64,000 nt of DNA from Auanema rhodensis (taxonomy: Eukaryota; Animalia; Nematoda), in contig OZ059895.1 of the NCBI GenBank assembly GCA_964057225.1, forward strand, positions 9,176,001 to 9,240,000, read 5' to 3'. Of the stretch, positions 21,301 to 35,995 are shown piece by piece (within the stretch, counting starts at the first letter, position 1; every line of letters begins with the position of its first letter). Made by a program: the position numbers and the translations under genes. Under the pieces are notes generated by a model that worked only from the letters and a program-made list of their open reading frames with translations, ran no database searches and had not been told where the DNA came from.

Positions 21301-23495
21301 GTAGTTACAGTTTGTGAAACTGAGATTTAACCACGGATTTTTACTATTTGTTTCCAATTTCTCTTCAAAAAACATTTGAAAATTGAAAAGAGATTGATGA
21401 AATTGAAACTAGCACAAGGTTCAAAATCCTTTTTTCCTGCATGGGGCTGCTTTTCTGTATAATAAAACTGGTACAAGGTAACGTTGAACAACTTGCTTGA
21501 AGCTGCACAGATATAAAATCATGTTCGACCATGCAGCAGAAACGATACTTTTTTGAAGATGCTGTAAGTATTTAAACTTTTAAAAGGTTAAATTGAGTTT
21601 CACCTATACCGTGTGCCACATTCGTGACCTTTTTGGGTCAAGACACACTGTCAATTTCTTCGATGTTCAATCTATATTATCTAGGTGTTCCATTTTTTTG
21701 CGATTATTTAAATAATCATTTATTTCCTTTTTATTTTTCTTAATAATGAGATTTGTAACAATCTGGACTCAACAGTATACTACATCTAGTTGCTGTAGAA
21801 CGCGATATACTTGAAATTCCTATGCACATGAACCAGCTTGGGTTGTAAAGTATATCCATGTTGTTGATTGCCATCACTATACATGATCCCTTTTTGTCAA
21901 TACGTGATACCTTGCTTCTAAATCAATCCCAATCAATCCTTCATTCTCAACTAACTGTGTGAACCACTATCCAACATACATGTACTGTCTTTCTCCCAGT
22001 TTTCTCGTACTTGTCTTCGTCTTGTTTGGCTTCCAGGTCGTGTCTTAACTGCTTCTGCAGTCATTGGCAGCCAGAAATAGAAGAAGCAGACTGACGCCAA
22101 CGACAACGATATCAACTACACTGATGAGACGTTGATGACGATGTAGTCAGAAGCCTGTTTTGTCTCCCGATGAACGACGACGATTCACTCTCATCCATAT
22201 AATTACACCTGACCTACACATAAGTAGAAGCATTCACTATTTTTTACTATCATCCTTCTTTCAAACCAATCATATAATGTCTTTTTTTCCTTTTAATTTC
22301 TAATTCTTCAAGTCTACTGATATTTCCATTAGTGCAACTTTCAAAGTTCCAAATGTATGATCATTCATATCCATCACAACTCTCGTTTTTCATTTTTTGG
22401 TTATTCTATCATCCTCACTGACCTAATTAGAAAACCTGAAAGAAATTACAGATATGTTGCACTTTCAAACAACTTATTTGAGCTAAATAAACGGAGGAGT
22501 AGCTCTTGTTTTTCCAGTGTCGCCTCGCCCAGTCAGGTCAACTCCGCCTATTTCTCTCTCATTTTCATCAAAATCTTCTTTCGTATCCTTGTCTTCGTTT
22601 CCACCTTGATCTTGCTTACGATTTCGGTTAAAATGTGGGCGGAGCCAATGAAAAAGAAATGAGATAATAAGATATAGAGGGACAGAAAATCAAAAGGCGT
22701 TAGAGACAGCTGAAGAGAAAGAGAGAAATGAGAGGGGTGAGAGAGAAAACAGGAGATCTAATTCTGACCTTGCTTAGATCTCTTTCGTTCACTTTCCCTA
22801 GCTATCATACTACCATTTCAGCGCAGACAACCTCCTGTTCACCTCATTGCTCAGTCGGTCTGATATGATCAATCATTTTAGATCGTACTTTATAAGGAGT
22901 TTTAACCTCACCGTACCAGCCTTACTGATCGAGAGAAAGCTCGCCGAACACTAAAAATGCTCAGTCTCAACTTAATAATGTTGTTCCTGAAACTGAAAGC
23001 ATAGTCTACTTGACACTATATTCTGCATAATTAATTTAGCATTTAACGATGTTATAATGTTCTCCCTAAAAAAGCAACACAAACAAGTATCTAATGACGA
23101 TCTATTTTCTTATTTTATGCCACTTTTGAACTCTATCTTTTATTTCTTTCGTTGCTGTTCTTATCGTTTTTATAATATTCGCTAATCTTCAATCATTTTA
23201 TATTACCATTCTTTGCTATGCTATTTATCTCTTTTCTTTTCTTTTCCATGACTTTTGACTCGTTTTAAAAGATGGTTTAATGATAAGAAATATTCTTAAC
23301 TATATCATATAGACAGATTTTAACTTAAACTTCTTATCGTAAACGTATTCTCACTTTGCTTGTAATACAAATACTATAAATTTCTTATTTTAGATAGCTG
23401 GAATTAACTCCGATTCCTTCTATCTACTCAATTTGGTTCTACATTCGCCCAAAACTACCCATCATTATTTGAAGCTCTTATCATAAGAAGAAATC

Positions 23496-24982
23496 ATGAA
23501 GACCTTATGGTAAGTACGATTAGTGATTAGAAATATTCTTAACAGCTACAAAGTTACTAAGAAACTAATCTATTCTTTAACTTTTAAATGTTTCGTTTCG
23601 TTTTGTTATAAATTATTTCAAATTGACACAAACAAACGGAAAATTTTGAATGAATATATATTTTTTTGCTTTACGATAACTGAATAAGCTTTTCTATAAT
23701 TTGCATGTGTTCTCTTGAAAAGAAACTTTTGAAAATGAACAATCAATCTCTAAAATATTCGTCTCGTTATTCTGTTTTTATTTTATGGAAAGACGTTTTG
23801 TTGATAACAAGGGGGAAAGTATGAAAAAAGAAGGAGGAATTTGAAGGTAAGGGGAACTGATATGTGCCACTGGGGGGCGTCGAGCTTCTATATCAGAGTA
23901 TATTAAATTTTTGTTGCGGTACAAACTGGCCAAAATAGATCTTTTTTTAAAGTTTAAAATGTTCTTACTCTTAACAATTATATAACCATTAGTATTGATA
24001 ATAATAATACAGATATAATGGAATAATCTCAGACGCAAGAAAGATAAAAGGAAATCAGAAAAAGAAAAGAAAAAGAGAATAAAGAGAGAGAGGGTGGAAA
24101 GAGAGAAACGAGGATAAAAACGTGTTTTTTAACTCTTCGTTTCGTTTGTAAAGCGAAGTCTAAAGAAAGAGAGAGTGAAAAACGATAACATCATCAAAGA
24201 AGAAAGGATCAGGCATCATGAAGCCATCATCATGAAACCAATCATCATCTTCTTTATCAGCTAACACAATTCCTATTTCTTGTCTGCATTTCATTTAGAA
24301 GTGGCATCAAAAAATTAATCTGTAATCGGTTGTTACTACGATTTCTCAGTTCAGCAAATATCCGTTCGGAAACATCATTGTTTCATATGCTCCATCATAG
24401 ATATTTTCCTCTATATCCACTTCCAAACGGTGATGTTAAGAAAACCGAAATTAGAAGTCGGAAGATCGCCTGAAAAACGAGGTCACGCTGTCTCGAGAAA
24501 GCCAAATAGCAGGTCCCGGGTTGGATTCCATGTTGTTGTATGATCATGGACCGACAAAATCATTTATCCTGGTCACACGTCCTAGAATTTTCCAAACTCG
24601 GCTGATTCCTTAATCGTGAGATACAATAACCTCTCATGTTCTTGTTAATAACAATCGGAAAATGAATGATTCAATATCATAATACTTGCAGGATTTTTCT
24701 TCTACTGATCTCTCTGCTCGCAACTTCGTCGATTGCATTTCCTCTCTTCGGCGGTAGTAGCGCTACAGAGGATATCACGTTGGCTGATCCAGCAGTAATT
24801 ATACATCACAGACATAAAAAGGTTTGTTCTTAGCAATCCTTAATAAGGCATGATTAAATTTTTCTTTCCAGCATCACATACGAAACAAGCATCGCCGTCG
24901 TAGTTTATCATCAAAGGAAGATGCCAAAGCTCGTCGCAACAAGCAAGTCATGCTAACGAAGCCATACTGGCCCTGGCCATAA
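23496..24982 (+). CDS. Small secreted peptide precursor, 84 aa, 3 coding exons (23496-23509, 24692-24821, 24872-24982)
   Basis: Canonical splice sites join in frame to give MKTLWIFLLLISLLATSSIAFPLFGGSSATEDITLADPAVIIHHRHKKHHIRNKHRRRSLSSKEDAKARRNKQVMLTKPYWPWP-stop, with a signal peptide and basic cleavage sites. Confidence 0.85.
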
Positions 24983-25636
24983 CTGCCAAAATTCTAAAAT
25001 TTACAGTTCTAAGTACGATTACTCAGCCAAATTCATGACGATCTGATTTGAATTCGTTAGCTTCTGATTTGCCCATTATCTCGATCTCACTTAATAATTC
25101 ATGCCATATTACAGTTATTGTATTTATAAATCTTCAAAATAGAACTCGAATCTCCCACCATTTCTTTCATTATATTTCTATTCATTATGTTCAAAATGTA
25201 CAGCTATATAAATAACTTGTATTTTTAAAATTTTCAGTATTATAAAACATATTCTACAGTAACTGTCTTGATATTTCATATCGAATTTGAAAACAAAATT
25301 TCTTCCCACAGAATACATATGGCAGAAATTTGAATTGGTATAATAGAAAACCAAGATGTCTTCTATAATCATGAAACAGAAGGGATATTTTATAATTTTA
25401 TCAACTCCTTCATATCCATCAAAGTACAGCATGATAACGTGGTGCAGAAGATATATTATATTTATGAGATGTTGAGTGGATGATAATTATCGCAAATTAT
25501 ATAACGGGATAGGATTAGAATTACGCAATAACATCATTTACAGTTCAGACGAAGTCATCACAGAAAATATTCAACAATACAAGAGGAATTCCTTCAAATT
25601 TTAAAATAGCTTTAATTTTTAAGCCTTTAATACGTT

Positions 25637-28313
<2,677 letters not shown>

Positions 28314-28702
28314 CCTGAATAAATAGCGATTAAGCAATTTCGAACATCTTGAAATATATTACGTACACGCTAAAGAAAATGTACGCAATCAAAATTATAT
28401 ATAAATTATATAATTATTTATATATATATATAATATAATATATATAATAAGATATTAAGAAATGAAAGGAATCATATAATTATATTAAAATAATTTCTTT
28501 CTTTCTTTTTTTAATTTTTATGCTTTCATATAAAACATGTGAATTAGACATCTAACATTATCAATAAATATTAAGATCATTAGTAAATCTGATGATTCTG
28601 TCAAATTTTTGCCATTTCTTTAAACTTTCATTGCAAATATCACAATTTCGTATACAACATTTATTCAATAAGCGAGTTTTATTAAAAAAACAATTTCTGA
28701 AT

Positions 28703-29521
28703 TTAAGCGTCAAAATGTTCTTTGTCGAAGACATATTCTCCCATTCCTTTTCCAAGTCTCTTCAAGTTTGCGACCATCTTAGCAATTTCAGAAATAGAAT
28801 TAACCTAAAAATTGATATTGTTATTTGGTTTCCATTCACGACTCTACTTGTTCATCCAAGAATTTTCCCTCTAAGAAATCGCTAGTGTGAGCATCATTAC
28901 ACTTTCCTGAAACGGCGTGAAGAGCGAGAAGAGATTCGTTGTTGAATTTCTCCAAAGCAAGGGCAGCCTTAAAATTATTTCTAAAAAGATAAGAGAATAA
29001 ATCTTATCAAGCTGCGCATTGCAATCCTTTCTGATAAAAGTTATAGGGTTATTCATATAAATTTTGTAAATAAGCTCATAGAGCATTAATAATATTTTAT
29101 ACTATGGACGGTAATTTAATCAAGCAATACTTACCTCGAAAGCATCAAGAGCAGACTCCCAAGAATTTTGCTCTGGTTTCTGAATAGCATTAAGAACAAC
29201 TCTTCCACCTCTTAGGTTTTGGAAGCGCATAAATTCTTGTGCATGCTCACGTTCTTCATCTGATTGCTTACGGAACCATCTGTAACGGCCCAATTATATT
29301 AACGATATAATTAAAAAATTTCTACTTGGCAACATTGGAAAGTGCAATATCGTCTCTGTCGAAATGACATGCCATGGAGAGATATACGTAAGAAGCATAG
29401 AGCTCAATGTTGATCTGAACTACTTAATTAAAAAATCTCATTATTCCACACTCACCTGCTTGTTAATCGCAGCTTCAACATCGGGAAGATAATTTTGACG
29501 AACAAGAGATTCCGAAGTCAT
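28703..29521 (-). CDS. ftn-2: Ferritin (H-type)
   Basis: [47 protein letters not shown]...[25 protein letters not shown]...[14 protein letters not shown]. The ftn-1 versus ftn-2 call is tentative and rests on recalled synteny only. Confidence 0.93.
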
Positions 29522-30178
29522 TTTCTAAAGTATAACAATGAAAAAATATACATTAAGGTTAATAAAGACAGTTGATCAATAACAACGTGATAAGGTTAAA
29601 ATTGGGTAGATACTATTGAATAGCAAAAATGTCAAAATATCTCATGAAAACAAGATTGAACATCGATTATCTAAATAAATATTTTGATTGAACTACATCA
29701 CGAAACAGGCGCATGTTAGGATTAGGGCAACTATTTTTTTAAATATCAAGAATTTAAAGGTAGAAATACAAATGAACACATTGACCTAAATACAATAGTA
29801 TGATATGGCTTATCATATGAAATAAACCAGTCAACTAATCATTTTCGACTACTGATTAATTCTCATGCCGTTATCTCCCGCCAAACTTAATCATTACCAT
29901 TGAAAAATAAATAGATTTTTTTTGTTGAAATACTGTATTGTATTTAATGGAAAGACGTTTTCACAGTTGTATTATGTGTTTTGGAAGTTGGTAACTTTGA
30001 TATTCTTCCAGATTGTTGCCTTTAAATAACAAAATAAGTTTTATTCATTACATATTAAAAATTGTATTACAATATTAAAAAAATAATTAAAGCAGTCCAT
30101 TAGAAGAATATATTATATAAAATATTAAACAAAATAATAATACTGCATACTTAGTATATCAATTGTAACTCAGTTTGA

Positions 30179-32680
30179 TCATTGTTGCTTTTTTATTACT
30201 GCTCCGAGTTTAGTTATGCTCATCTGGAAACCATACTATAATTTATGTCTTTAATAAATAACATACTTGTGTTGCGAATTCTAGACTATTTTTAGTCTCT
30301 TCCTCCTGAGCACTAGCAGGACTTATGCCAACAATCACCAGTGTTTTGGAATTTCCCGCGCCTAAACTATCCATGAGTAGCGTGGTTAGTTTAGAATCAC
30401 GATAAGGGACGGGTTCGCTCTATAAAACAACAAGTTGAGAGAATAAATTCAACATCAAATCCATACTAAAAGTTGTGTTCTGATACAGGTCTCAAAGGCA
30501 GAGAGCTTATGGAATCCACACCTTGGTTGTGGGGTTTGAGTTTTATCAACACGAGAAGCAGATTTCTCAACAAAGGAGAGAACCGAATTCAGTTCCAAAT
30601 CTGGAAAAGAAAAATGCATAACGGGATAAAATATGAAACATACTAAGAATATCATTACGAGCTTCAATATGCACTCTCAATACCCTATGTTTTCCGGTAA
30701 AGGTATCATTGCAGTTGGTTGCAGCTGCGGAATCATATTGATTTGCAACGTTCAATATATAAGTAATCTGAATAGTAATCTGAATACTCTAACTCAATAT
30801 GAAGATTACATCTTCTTCAGAATCGATTGTTGTTTTAACAACACCAGAGACTACACAGGTTCCTGACTCAATCTTTAGTTCAATTTTCTGACGATTATTG
30901 AGTAAATCATACACTTCCTCCATGTAAATTTCCAAAAAAGAGCCTTTGAAGTCAAACTAAATACAAATTAACAAGACTAGTACTTCTACTTTCTGTTTAC
31001 CTCCCATCCCAACCCCGATAGTTCATTCTTACGCTGAAAAATGCATTTCGCTGCTCTTGGAATGAGTCCCTCTTGATCATCAGAACCTTAAAACAAGTAT
31101 ACATTAACTCTAAAGAAAACACTGACCTCCGATCATTGTATAAGTTTTTCCACTCCCTGGTTGACCGAAACATATGAGCGATACGTTGTATCCGTGTAAA
31201 CATGACTAAATACTTCAAATTAGGGTTATAAATGTTAAGTTTAATACATGAACAAGTTCTTCAACATCTTCGAATAATTTACGCTGAGTTGTAGTTGGTC
31301 CATACACTTTTAGATACTTATAAGAAGTAGCTTCCTCGTTCTTGAATTTCAGTTATTATTCTTTTTAAAACGTATGATGTTTATCTTACAGAGCCAGCTC
31401 GTATTATAAAGGGAGTTGGATATTCTAGAGAACCACATTGTTCATCGTTTATTAGAGGTCGAACTCTTACTGCCACTCGGATTTGTCCCTAAAGACTATA
31501 CTGTAGACAGATTTTATAAATTAAAGTTCACCAAAAGAAAAACAATGAGATTCAAAACAAATTTGAACTTTGGTATTGAATTGATAGCCCAAAGTTTGTC
31601 ACTTACTCTAAGATCTACAGCGTCATTTAATAGTTTTCTTAATTGTAAATCAGAATTTCGTAGATCAGATCGCAAGCCATCCTCTACTTCCTGCAGTTTA
31701 GCAATCTGTGCTTTACCTCGTTTAATTTCTTTATCCAAATAAGAACTTTTTTCCTTCAATCTCTCATACTTTACCTGAACAAAAATTAAAAACTTAAAAG
31801 TGTACAAGAATAATTACCATCGAATTGACATGTTTCTTATTTAACGATTCCAATTGCCCATGCATTCGACCAAAATGGTCTTGACCACTCAGAACCTTAA
31901 ACAAAGTAAATATAATAAATGTCATAAGATTGGAAACTTTACAAGTTCATCTCTGAAATCAAGTTTTCGTTGCATTAATGTCAAATCAAATTTTTGCTCC
32001 TCATATTTTTTTTCATTTTCTTTAATTTCTTTCTCGTAATTCAGAATCTTTTTTTCGTTCTCAGTTTGCTGCAACTGCAGTTGGGAGATTAACTCCTCTT
32101 GAGATTTGATGATGTCTTGCAATGCACTCTCTTCCAAACCAAAGCTTGGCAATTTTGCGCTTGCTTCATGATCACTTGGAAAAAAGTCATAATCTGGGGA
32201 GGTTGCACCAAGATCATTTGAGGTGGCACCAAGATCATTTGAGGTGGCATCAAGGTCATTCGAGGTGGCATCATGGTTATTTTTCTAAATAGTGGTAAAA
32301 ATGTTACAGTATATTTGACCAAATTGTTTGCTTACTGTAGGTGTCTTTTTAGTTGCTGAAAAAAAAAGATAAATTCAGTAAAATAGGTTTTGCCTACGTT
32401 TCGACCGAGGAGTATTAGAAGCTCTTTTAGTTCTAGAACGTTTCAATCCAGAAGAAGCTGTTTCAAAAATTACAATCACGCTTATGATTTTAAACATACT
32501 TGAAAAAAAAGAAGGTCTTATGAGACGAGTAAATTCCCTGCTTCTACGTCTCAGGTTAGCAGCATGTCCAACTCTCACTGATGAACCTATTCGTTTCTCA
32601 AGTTATAAGGTAGATATATTTGATATACCTGCTTTACTGCGGGTTTTCAGAAGTGATTTAGAAATTGGAGTTTCAGGCAT
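30179..32680 (-). CDS. Kinesin-14 family (C-terminal motor) protein with degenerate switch motifs
   Basis: Basic tail starting [17 protein letters not shown], then coiled coil. Kinesin-14 neck [23 protein letters not shown]-loop [74 protein letters not shown]. Confidence 0.88.
32190..32275 (-). repeat. 21-bp coding tandem repeat (~4 copies; ATSNDL[D/G]) in the kinesin tail
   Basis: gcaccaagatcatttgaggtg repeated with variants; translates as [30 protein letters not shown]. Confidence 0.85.
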
Positions 32681-33636
32681 TATGTCTATAAAAAGTTTAC
32701 GACAAATTTTTAGATTTGAAGGAATCTATGTATTAAAAATTAGCTAATTTTATGTTTAAGTTATTGAGGCCACGTATGCAGTGCTCAAACTGAAGGTAAT
32801 GGGCAGTGATAATCTGCAGGCACTCCAAATAAATCTCCCTTTTCAATCAATTTCCCTTTCTAATAGATGGTGATATTCGAAAACCCCTAGATACGGTAAC
32901 TAAGGTGTTCAAAAAAAAAAAAGTCGCGCCCACCCTAAAATGCTAGCGCATACTTAGATGTTAGCACAAACAAAATGTTGACGTGAACTTGGTGGCAGCT
33001 TAGTATAAGTGAGACTGAAGAACACTGGCAGCGTTACATGAAATGCCTTCGGATTTTAGAAACCGAAGTTGTGTTTTATAATAATTTTAAAGCTATGCAT
33101 AATCTCTTTAAAGTGTTAAGCTATAGGTTAATTAAAAAAAATAATATATAGTTGATTTTATTTTCATTTTAACGATATGCTATTTTTTCTAAGTGCTGTA
33201 CTAACTTGATAAAATAAAACGTTAGTTAATAAACTTTATATTTTTCCAAAACATTAATATACTATACATATACTCCTGCTTTTCCCTATTCACATTTTGA
33301 AATGTAATATTATAAATTGGACATGTCATATTTTAATGACTTAGTCTTATCGTATTCGTCTAAAATTTTTGAGCTTTAAACATTCAGAACCTCGGACTCT
33401 GGTCTCTTTATTCTTTGAGCTAAAAGGCTTTCAAAATTTTTTGAAAAGAGCCGATAAATGACATTGATGCTACTCTCAAATATGCCATGGGTTCCTATGC
33501 GTCTCTAACATGGTCTGTGCAAATCCTCTACGCTAATACTCTTTTTCTTCTCTGTTGTCCATATTTTTACTTCTTTAAATGTAGTCTATCTGCTTCATTA
33601 TTTTTTTGATTGAAGTTGATTTTAGTTTTTTAAGCC

Positions 33637-35671
33637 ATGTTTGAAGACAGCGATGACTCTGATGAAAGAATGTCGCAGCCTTCCAGCTCTCGGCAACCAT
33701 TCGATCCTAAACCTCATTTGGTAACAATTATCAAATCAAATACAGGTAGGAAAACTTCAATCTGTGGTTTTATAATATTTTTTTCAGAGTTTGGTTTCAA
33801 TGTTAAGGGGCAAATTAGTGAAGGAGGTCAATTAAGAAGTTTGAATGGGGTTTTATATCCGCCTTTGCAACATGTCAGCGCTGTTTTATCTGGCGGAGTT
33901 GCTGAAAAGGCAAATTTGAGAAAAGGAGATAGAATACTAGAAGTGTAGGCTATTTAAAAAAATGCTATTTTTATTGATTTAATCCGTTGTAGTAATGGAG
34001 TGAATGTGGAAGGAGGCAATCATCGACAGGTTGTTGAATTAATCAAAAGAGGAGGCGATAAGCTAACCATGTTAGTTATTTCCGTAGATGATGCTGAAAT
34101 AGACAGGTAATTTAAATACAATCTAGAATACTTTTTGGTTTAAATCATGATTTAGATTTGAGTCGTTTGAAGAGAGCATGTTATCAAGCCGATATGATTA
34201 TTCTGAAAGCCGTTCTCTTCCTCTTACTATCCCTTCATATCATACGATTAATGATGGTATTGAGCGATATGTGGTATGCAATTAATTTTCAAGGCTGTTA
34301 ATTTCTGTGTGTTAAGATATATAATATTTATATGGCTGGTCGACATTTGGGATCCAGAAGATATAGTGAATTTGTGGAATTAAACTCAATGCTTAAAAAA
34401 GAATTTTGTGATTTCTCATTTCCTAAGCTTCCTGGAAAATGGCCATTCAATCTATCCAAGCAACAACTCGACTCGCGACGACGGTGAGTGGATGGTTATA
34501 ATTCTAATAACTTTATTTGTTTTAGCGGGTTGGAACAGTATATTGAAAAAATTTGTTCAGTTCGTGTAATTGTAGATTCAGACATTGTTCAAGTAATCAA
34601 GCATCTATATATAGACATATACTGATTTTTTAGGATTTTTTAATGGAGTGTGATCCGTTATGTGAAGTTGAAGTGAGAGTCTTGTTACCAGATAATACTT
34701 CTTTGAATATGATGATTCGAAAAAACGCTTCTGCGAGTTATCTATATTCATTGATACAAAAAAAATTGAACATGAGTCGTGAAACTGCTGCTGCTTGTGC
34801 GTTATTTGAAATATGTGATTCTGGATTAGGTATATTATCTTTGAATTTTTAAATTAGTTAATTTTTTTCTCAGAACGTAAGATAGCTTCTGGCGAATCTC
34901 CTCATACTATTTATGTTCAAAATAATTCATCTGCTTCGTCTTCTTGCATTGTTCTTCGAAAACTTCTATTCAATATTGATATGGAGAAAGAATTATGCAT
35001 GCGTGACAGTTTTTTTCAATTACTTACTTTTTACCAAGCTGTTGCTGATTTGGGCCAGGTTTTTTATTTCTGTAGTTTTGTTTCAAACTAGGCGTTTTTT
35101 TCAGGGCCGAATTAAATCTAATCAAAAACTATATCAGCTGAAATCTCTACAGAATGAAAAAACAGCTTATCAGGTACAATTGCATTTTTTTCCGTTTTTG
35201 TTTATGTTATTTTCAGTTTCTTGAATTGGCAAGAACTTTTGAAGGTTATAACGAAGTGAAATTTCCTCCCTGTCGTTGTGTTGTTTCTAGTCGAGAAGGT
35301 GAAATAATTCTTATATGCCGTCCTAATAATCTTGTGCTTTGGGCATGTGACGGAAATTTTGAGGTATGTTTTTCGAATTTTTGAGCATGTATTCTTTTCA
35401 TCTTAGAAAGATAAAATGATCATTGAATGGGAAGATGTTGTATTGTATCGATTGTTGGAAGACGCTACTTCTTTCTTAATAGAGTATAAACCTGCAGGTA
35501 AAAAAAGAAAGAACGTGCATTTATATAGTCCCTTCGTAAGTGTTTATTAATAATAGTTCATTGTAGAATTTATCTGTTTAGGTTTTTTTTATGGCTGAAT
35601 GTTTTACACAAATCCAATTTGAGCGGCAGGTTGCTTCAGATTGGAAATCCCGCATGGGTTCTTCCGAATAG
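33637..35671 (+). CDS. snx-27: Sorting nexin 27 (PDZ-PX-FERM-like)
   Basis: [33 protein letters not shown] (SNX27 PDZ). PX domain [18 protein letters not shown]...[29 protein letters not shown] segment VEVRVLLPD. Confidence 0.95.
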
Positions 35672-35995
35672 AGTTAGGTGAAAACCTTACGACTACTGCT
35701 TTATGTACATATTTTTTTTCAACATCTGAACATTAGAGGTTAGTATTTTCAAGACATCATTGTTTCAATGTTATTTTTCTTGTGAGCTTTGAGAATGCGT
35801 TGTATTTATTAATGTTTTATACATGTACAATAATAGAATGTTAAATTGTTTATATTTGTATAATGTTGTTTTAATTTTTATTAAAAATTGTTAATGCTTT
35901 CTAAATATTTTTAATTGTAAACACGTTATTCCGTCAAGTTACTTCAATCAAGATTGTTTATTATTTACTATTAAACTTTACTAGGATTTTTTTTA

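Follow-up and report, generated by a model that had tools for sequence, protein, structure and literature searches.

The subject of this analysis is a kinesin-14 gene on the minus strand of a 64,000-nucleotide (nt) stretch of the Auanema rhodensis genome (assembly GCA_964057225.1, contig OZ059895.1, positions 9,176,001 to 9,240,000), which is referred to as the window below, with its first letter being position 1 and all of the features of the gene being given on the minus strand. As placed by the tree and by the gene order, it is, by descent, a member of the KLP-15/16 kinesin-14A group that fails two catalytic hallmarks, namely, switch I and switch II, and it is the positional ortholog of a KLP-15/16-type kinesin-14 (P0151) encoded by Auanema sp. 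JU1783. The favored interpretation is that catalysis was given up at some point in the past and that the protein has been retained for another purpose ever since, and it seems reasonably probable that this purpose is the role of a dimeric microtubule binder or bundler that would not hydrolyze ATP and would be maintained by selection.

Loss of the catalytic switches

The Gly and Glu of switch II, together with the Ser-Ser-Arg of switch I, are what a kinesin uses to sense the γ-phosphate of ATP and to position the attacking water, and a salt bridge between the switch Arg and Glu is needed for microtubule-stimulated hydrolysis. In kinesins and myosins, neither this Gly and Glu of switch II nor the Arg of switch I is known to vary, and their single substitutions abolish the microtubule-stimulated ATPase activity. 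In the window protein, switch I (30687..30710) reads NDTFTGKH in place of NxxSSRSH, as established by alignment to the relatives and to the KIF3B and Kar3 chains from the PDB, with NDTFTGKH falling exactly over NExSSRSH in the alignment of solved kinesins. SSRS has turned into FTGK, and each of these four codons is two nucleotides away from that of the ortholog (eight substitutions in 12 nt).

At the switch II site (30551..30574), FVEKSASR is read and DLAGSE is absent. An earlier reading of the window (the original prediction) had given SFVEKSASR here instead of LVDLAGSER: the letters read there stand, whereas a residue-by-residue replacement does not, as the best protein alignment under standard gap costs contains one in-frame eight-codon deletion (LAGSERAK) directly after the β7 strand, the junction of which lies between E490 (30566-30568) and K491 (30563-30565), and the DNA alignment against the ortholog agrees, showing a 24-nt gap at switch II. 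One more codon is deleted further on in exon 14, and the length of this exon (134 nt vs. 161 nt in the ortholog) fits an eight-codon plus a one-codon deletion; going by these alignments, switch II is missing, rather than substituted. Exon 14 retrieved zero PDB chains even at E ≤ 10; the orthologous JU1783 exon matches 36 kinesin chains.

The P-loop (31143..31166) reads GQPGSGKT, which fits the Walker A pattern GxxxxGKT and departs from the GQTxxGK[ST] of the family at its invariant Thr (T349P; codon 349 is CCA in the window gene and ACG in both of the Auanema sp. JU1783 genes). The L11/α4 segment (30476..30520), which includes FHKLSAF, is diverged, with CIRxQL being kept and INxxLS being lost. 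Retained, on the other hand, are the neck/β1 junction with the RxRP nucleotide-pocket motif (31456..31488), whose invariant family columns are kept, and the VPYRDSKLT microtubule-binding segment of L12/α5 (30384..30410), which also keeps its invariant columns and aligns to many kinesin chains. The readings of the P-loop, of both switch sites, of FHKLSAF and of VPYRDSKLT in the original prediction were all recovered where it had placed them, on the minus strand, and its claim that both switches are dead holds, the two γ-phosphate sensors being gone. With these sensing residues missing from both switches, no ATP turnover is predicted; as the Walker A Lys and Thr, RxRP and the Tyr following the P-loop are retained, nucleotide binding seems possible. 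Inspection of all frames around the gene revealed no DLAGSE-like or SSRSH-like peptide, and none of the introns is long enough to accommodate an alternative exon with the canonical motifs.

All of the 33 full-length relatives compared (P0151; P0013, which is a second kinesin-14 gene of Auanema sp. JU1783 residing at a different locus; and 31 others) keep SSRSH, DLAGSE and GQTGSGKT or a valid variant thereof. Neither the window protein itself nor a switch-dead relative was found by a representative search with exon 15 or by a word search with P0013, and a word search with the 70-residue genomic open reading frame holding exon 14 gave no match, the latter being little informative given the length filter and the content of the database. 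The literature likewise yielded no description of an animal kinesin-14 as hydrolysis-dead, nor anything of the kind for Auanema kinesins or KLP-15/16 variants, most subscription journals lying outside the coverage of the search.

Several candidates for further dead motors were rejected. Other fetched proteins apparently devoid of the motifs were mostly incomplete fragments from the exon-15 search; KLP-17-like Caenorhabditis proteins do not represent P-loop losses, their GPTSSGKT being a valid Walker A; and both C. briggsae KLP-16.1 (P0197, with the P-loop exon region missing) and a N. brasiliensis protein with a garbled switch I (P0032) have intact records (P0171 and P0159, respectively), so that annotation errors are the probable cause. 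Three Caenorhabditis proteins (P0181, P0182 and P0184; 445-465 residues) are shorter kinesin-14 paralogs, in which GPT(S/G)SGKT has Pro replacing the usual Gln and RVR(D/K) replaces RVRP, the switches being canonical.

Gene model, transcripts and protein layout

The gene model, based on three-frame translation and splice signals, extends from the ATG at 32680 to the stop codon at 30179-30181 (coding region 30179..32680) and consists of 16 exons with 588 codons plus the stop: exons 1-4 (32629-32680, 32500-32586, 32398-32457 and 32336-32355), exons 5-8 (31943-32284, 31818-31895, 31607-31774 and 31390-31488), exons 9-12 (31248-31340, 31127-31205, 31001-31086 and 30810-30956) and exons 13-16 (30644-30767, 30467-30600, 30267-30419 and 30179-30223). 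All 15 introns are GT-AG, 14 of them being 40-51 nt long and one being 118 nt long, and the junctions are matched by spliced transcript contigs, one of which, about 1860 nt long, was obtained from each of four runs of a single study. These contigs show no mismatch to the gene, cover the deletion site and skip exactly the 15 predicted introns. The openness of the spliced frame, as claimed originally, is thus confirmed by contigs from four runs, and alternative splicing restoring the motifs, which had been named beforehand as an observation that would overturn the claim, is excluded.

The labeling of the runs as RNA is a guess only; that the contigs derive from mRNA follows from their complete splicing and from a leader remnant. 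The share of the 31-mers of the gene found in the runs was 0.48, with about 0.50 being expected from the exon lengths for a fully spliced transcript, and the transcript k-mer depth was modest (about 11). The contig of run X3 extends past 32687 with CAAACTTG on the plus strand, i.e., CAAGTTTG on the mRNA strand, which, when joined to the genomic AG at 32686..32687, gives CAAGTTTGAG, the sequence with which the nematode SL1 leader ends at its 3' side; it appears that SL1 is trans-spliced onto the mRNA at this acceptor, which precedes the ATG by 5 nt. The exon 13 acceptor is spanned by a 12-nt unit perfectly duplicated in tandem (30762-30786), which provides a second in-frame AG 12 nt upstream. 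Splicing at this second AG would lengthen the protein by ITIQ; in the transcript contigs, only the acceptor at 30767 is used.

When the exons were compared with the Pfam kinesin family (PF00225), exons 15 (E 2.6e-16), 10 (3.5e-9) and 12 (7.2e-7) matched, the match of exon 13, which encodes switch I, was weak (E 0.051), and exon 14, which encodes switch II, had no PF00225 match; kinesin chains from the PDB were matched as well. The motor occupies residues 270-575 of the 588, leaving 13 residues to the C-terminus, and is preceded by a tail, a coiled coil and a neck, which, going by these domain assignments, is the architecture of a kinesin-14. The kinesin-14 identity given by the original prediction agrees with PF00225, the C-terminal motor, the placement in the family tree and the gene order, and its statement that the neck, the coiled coil and the VPYRDSKLT segment are kept is borne out by the alignment and the invariant columns and can be extended to the tail.

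This tail (residues 1-73; 32399..32680) is basic and rich in Ser, Thr and Pro, having 20 Lys and Arg vs. 2 Asp and Glu, and shares the motif ANLRRRSRE with P0151; it is a putative ATP-independent microtubule-binding site, as is typical of kinesin-14A tails. The coiled-coil stalk (approximately residues 120-269, exons 5 to 7; 31607..32150) was recognized by its sequence pattern and by alignment: it contains zero prolines, five to six out of eight heptad a/d positions are hydrophobic throughout, Pfam coiled-coil families match it weakly, and it aligns with the stalk of the KLP-15/16 relatives. Between the basic tail and the stalk, Tandem Repeats Finder detected a 21-nt tandem repeat in exon 5 (32199..32270; 3.4 copies, 92% matches), which codes for acidic ATSNDL(D/G) units and is absent from P0151; its insertion is why exon 5 is 63 nt longer than that of the ortholog (342 nt vs. 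279 nt).

Orthology and phylogeny

The closest proteins, going by what exon 15 retrieved in the representative search and what its best hit, P0013, retrieved in the word search, are KLP-15/16-type kinesin-14s of rhabditids (Auanema, strongylids, Caenorhabditis and Pristionchus), with the C. elegans cluster of the family containing "kinesin like protein-15" and two 587-residue chromosome I proteins. The top full-length match is P0151, with 44% identity across residues 1-588. An SNX27-like gene, the kinesin, a ferritin gene and a DEAD-box helicase gene follow each other in the same order in the window and in the JU1783 contig. P0151 has the same 16 exons and phases, the exon lengths differing only in the tail exons 1-3 and in exons 5, 8 and 14, which in the window gene are 63 nt longer, 3 nt shorter and 27 nt shorter, respectively. 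The proteins of the neighboring genes are 74-84% identical to those of JU1783, which puts the species of the window fairly close to Auanema sp. JU1783, whereas the kinesin is 56% identical in those parts that can be aligned at all. Collinearity between the window (approximately 22500-35700) and the JU1783 contig (L001, 6400-22350) extends over more than 13 kb, with more conserved blocks beyond.

In the maximum-likelihood tree, the window protein groups with P0151 (98/94), and both of them group with P0013 (100/100), inside the nematode KLP-15/16 clade. The terminal branch of the window protein, at 1.40 substitutions per site, is about four times as long as that of P0151 (0.36). As this topology implies that the duplication is probably older than the split of the species, an ortholog of P0013 is to be expected in the A. 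rhodensis genome; no second kinesin-14 is present within the 64-kb window.

Decay versus constraint

Among the 106 columns that are at least 90% identical in the 33 relatives, the window protein keeps 79, vs. 97-105 in the eight relatives tallied, long-branch ones among them. The losses are anything but evenly spread: 20 of the 31 invariant columns within residues 449-526 (from before switch I to L12) are lost, vs. 7 of the 75 elsewhere (Fisher p = 1.5e-8; scoring the deletion as one event gives 4.8e-7), and the Thr of the P-loop is one of these seven. Pairwise nonsynonymous divergence (dN), with P0013 as the reference, is likewise accelerated about 8-fold in exons 13-14. As the synonymous divergence (dS) from both the ortholog and the paralog is saturated, pairwise dN/dS could not be computed, and a parsimony-polarized branch count was used instead, in which codons identical in P0151 and P0013 were taken as ancestral. 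Outside exons 13-14, the window branch shows a dN of 0.106 and a dS of 1.11 (dN/dS of about 0.10, which, resting on 71 selected codons with dS near saturation, is an indication rather than a measurement), and the P0151 branch shows a dN of 0.048 and a dS of 1.29 (dN/dS of about 0.04); in the switch exons 13-14, the dN of the window branch is approximately 0.4-0.5.

These figures bear directly on the alternative that the gene is a duplicate becoming a pseudogene, i.e., that it was redundant after the switch II deletion and is open either by chance or because of a recent release. The terminal branch about four times as long as that of the ortholog, the acceleration seen in all regions, the new repeat inserted in the tail, the restriction of the dead state to a single lineage and the modest transcript depth would all suit such a gene. 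We nevertheless consider it unlikely, as the frame of 588 codons is open, none of the 30 splice sites is damaged, the four differences in length from the ortholog in the stalk-to-motor exons all preserve the frame, the losses are strongly non-uniform and dN/dS outside the switch exons is low. A stop codon results from approximately 5% of the single-nucleotide changes to the coding sequence, and a simulated neutral frame of 1764 nt remained open with a probability of about 0.012 at 0.05 substitutions per site and in none of the 2000 simulations at 0.1 or more, so that a neutral frame would close long before eight substitutions accumulate in the 12 nt of switch I. Compared with such survival, the decay of the switches is large, which means that the frame has been held open for far longer than the decay of the catalytic site took. 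Even an unconstrained catalytic region would need far more time than a neutral frame survives, and positive selection acting on it would also imply function. The original prediction had listed neutral evolution and lack of expression as findings that would speak against it; what is seen instead is a dN/dS of about 0.1 outside the switch exons, an open frame and a spliced mRNA.

Proposed function and remaining alternatives

The course of events that we envisage would begin with the removal of switch II by the in-frame eight-codon deletion in the A. rhodensis lineage of a KLP-15/16-type spindle motor, after which secondary decay would have changed switch I from SSRS to FTGK, replaced the P-loop Thr with Pro and remodeled L11, with purifying selection keeping the tail, the stalk, the neck, the core fold, the Walker A Lys and Thr, RxRP and the L12/α5 surface. 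Given the conservation of L12/α5 (PYRDSKLT), the neck, the stalk and the basic tail, a dimer with two kinds of microtubule-binding site is predicted, which might statically cross-link or bundle microtubules via its tail and dead heads or, alternatively, act as a brake or anchor that resists sliding in those spindle processes that normally use KLP-15/16; a canonical paralog would then supply the motor activity. The bundling of microtubules in the acentrosomal spindle of C. elegans oocytes is promoted by KLP-15/16 (PMC5614648), and a dead motor with two binding sites could, by analogy, still bundle as they do. The state of the sequence, the expression and splicing, the orthology, the clustering of the losses and the constraint elsewhere are observed, whereas the loss of ATPase activity, microtubule binding, dimerization, the role in the cell and an active paralog encoded in the same genome are inferred.

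Several points weigh against this interpretation and ought to be considered together. The catalytic inactivity itself is something that we infer from the motifs, and the dead state is known from one genome and one lineage, with no second species or strain showing it and its own conservation being uncertain. The N-terminal part of α4, a main microtubule contact, is also diverged, so that the binding of the head to microtubules is not assured. Outside the pocket, the protein has evolved 1.7- to 3-fold faster along its whole length (by pairwise dN, with P0013 as the reference), and generally relaxed constraint would also produce both this acceleration and the approximately fourfold terminal branch; the 71 codons behind the polarized dN/dS were, moreover, picked for conservation, and their dS is at or near saturation. 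Lastly, the intact paralog in the A. rhodensis genome is probably there going by the tree alone, an alternative topology of which was not quite rejected by the approximately unbiased test (p = 0.051).

Another possibility, and one that the original prediction had offered alongside a cross-linker, is that of a partner head similar to yeast Vik1/Cik1: the protein would form a coiled-coil heterodimer with the active P0013 ortholog, its dead head possibly serving as a microtubule foothold and altering the processivity, speed or targeting of the active motor. The architecture fits (a coiled coil, a neck and a C-terminal kinesin-fold head without hydrolysis), the active partner probably exists, as the duplication predates the species split in the tree, and in yeast the non-catalytic head makes Kar3 processive (PMC4338441). 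The stalk, however, which such pairing would engage, is the most diverged part relative to the paralog (dN of about 1.2), the Walker A loop and RxRP are kept, unlike in Vik1/Cik1, PDB searches with exons 12, 13, 14 and 15 returned catalytic kinesins or nothing and never Vik1/Cik1, and the heterodimer is putative, with its active partner deduced from the tree. We therefore regard such a partner head as doubtful; of the likeness originally proposed, a head predicted to lack hydrolysis, on a coiled coil, stands, and the absence of a nucleotide pocket and the affinity in sequence do not. It is just as improbable, in our estimation, that an animal counterpart of Kar3-Vik1/Cik1 has been caught early, in the form of a recently inactivated KLP-15/16 paralog paired with its active sister; under such a reading, the protein, which can still be recognized as a kinesin, would perhaps still bind nucleotide, and the pair would form a kinesin-14 with one active head, the processivity or targeting of which would be altered in nematode meiosis.

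Continued activity as an ATPase motor, by means of an unconventional site to which other residues contribute, is very improbable: the Walker A GxxxxGKT, RxRP and the Asn and His of switch I are kept, an acidic residue occupies the position of the switch II Asp (VE for VD) and a Thr occupies that of the second switch I Ser, but Gly and Glu are missing from switch II and Arg from switch I, and not one of the 33 aligned relatives tolerates these switch changes. An artefact of the assembly or of the gene model can hardly be entertained, as the transcript contigs of four runs, which are independent of the assembly, agree with it base for base in every exon.

Comparison with known systems

Examples of non-catalytic kinesin heads come from yeast (Vik1/Cik1) and from ancient, divergent families (kinesin-11), and no case is known in which such a head was seen to arise from a working motor. 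An active ortholog at the same locus of a related species, a defined lesion and constraint elsewhere in the protein together amount to a natural experiment, which asks which parts of a kinesin-14 matter after the loss of hydrolysis, and the favored interpretation, that of a non-hydrolyzing microtubule binder or bundler, would provide a candidate static cross-linker for acentrosomal spindle assembly, the other candidate role there being that of a partner head. Were the early counterpart of Vik1/Cik1 to prove true, it would illustrate the way in which a motor gives rise to a non-catalytic partner of the motor-homology type.

The nearest known system is the KLP-15/KLP-16 pair of C. elegans with its rhabditid orthologs (kinesin-14A; the Ncd/KIFC1/HSET group), which have the same domain order as the window protein (basic tail, coiled coil, GQIRV neck and C-terminal motor) and share the CIRxQL signature of the family with it. 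The switches of this family are canonical in all 33 relatives, whereas in the window protein switch II is deleted and SSRS is FTGK. With P0151 in particular, the window gene shares the collinear locus and the 16 exons; unlike P0151, it has the P-loop Pro, the remodeled L11, the 21-nt repeat and the roughly fourfold terminal branch.

In Vik1 and Cik1, the partners of yeast Kar3, the nucleotide-binding site is wholly absent and detectable kinesin motifs are not known. The window protein, unlike them, retains Walker A, RxRP and most of the core motifs, and would be a recent derivative of a canonical motor (about 44% identical to the active ortholog) with an origin independent of theirs. What the two would have in common is a C-terminal kinesin-fold head without ATP hydrolysis on a coiled coil, in the setting of kinesin-14 function (PMC4338441). 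As judged by the kept P-loop, the lack of sequence affinity and the independent recent origin, the window protein is not a member of the Vik1/Cik1 family.

A motor domain that is a microtubule-binding module without motor activity, as predicted for the window protein, is the feature of the kinesin-11 proteins KIF26A/B and C. elegans VAB-8, Kif26b having no ATPase activity and associating with microtubules (PMC3387196). These functional analogs belong to another family, however, which is ancient and conserved throughout the animals; they carry the motor at the N-terminus, and their roles lie in signaling and adhesion instead of those of a spindle kinesin-14. Lastly, there are the engineered rigor or uncoupled mutants of kinesin-1, Ncd and Kar3, in which the pair of switch I Arg and switch II Glu, or the switch II Gly, is lost. 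Those, however, are single substitutions made in the laboratory, whereas the window protein presents a natural loss of the whole switch II loop, accompanied by further decay or remodeling of the elements around it.

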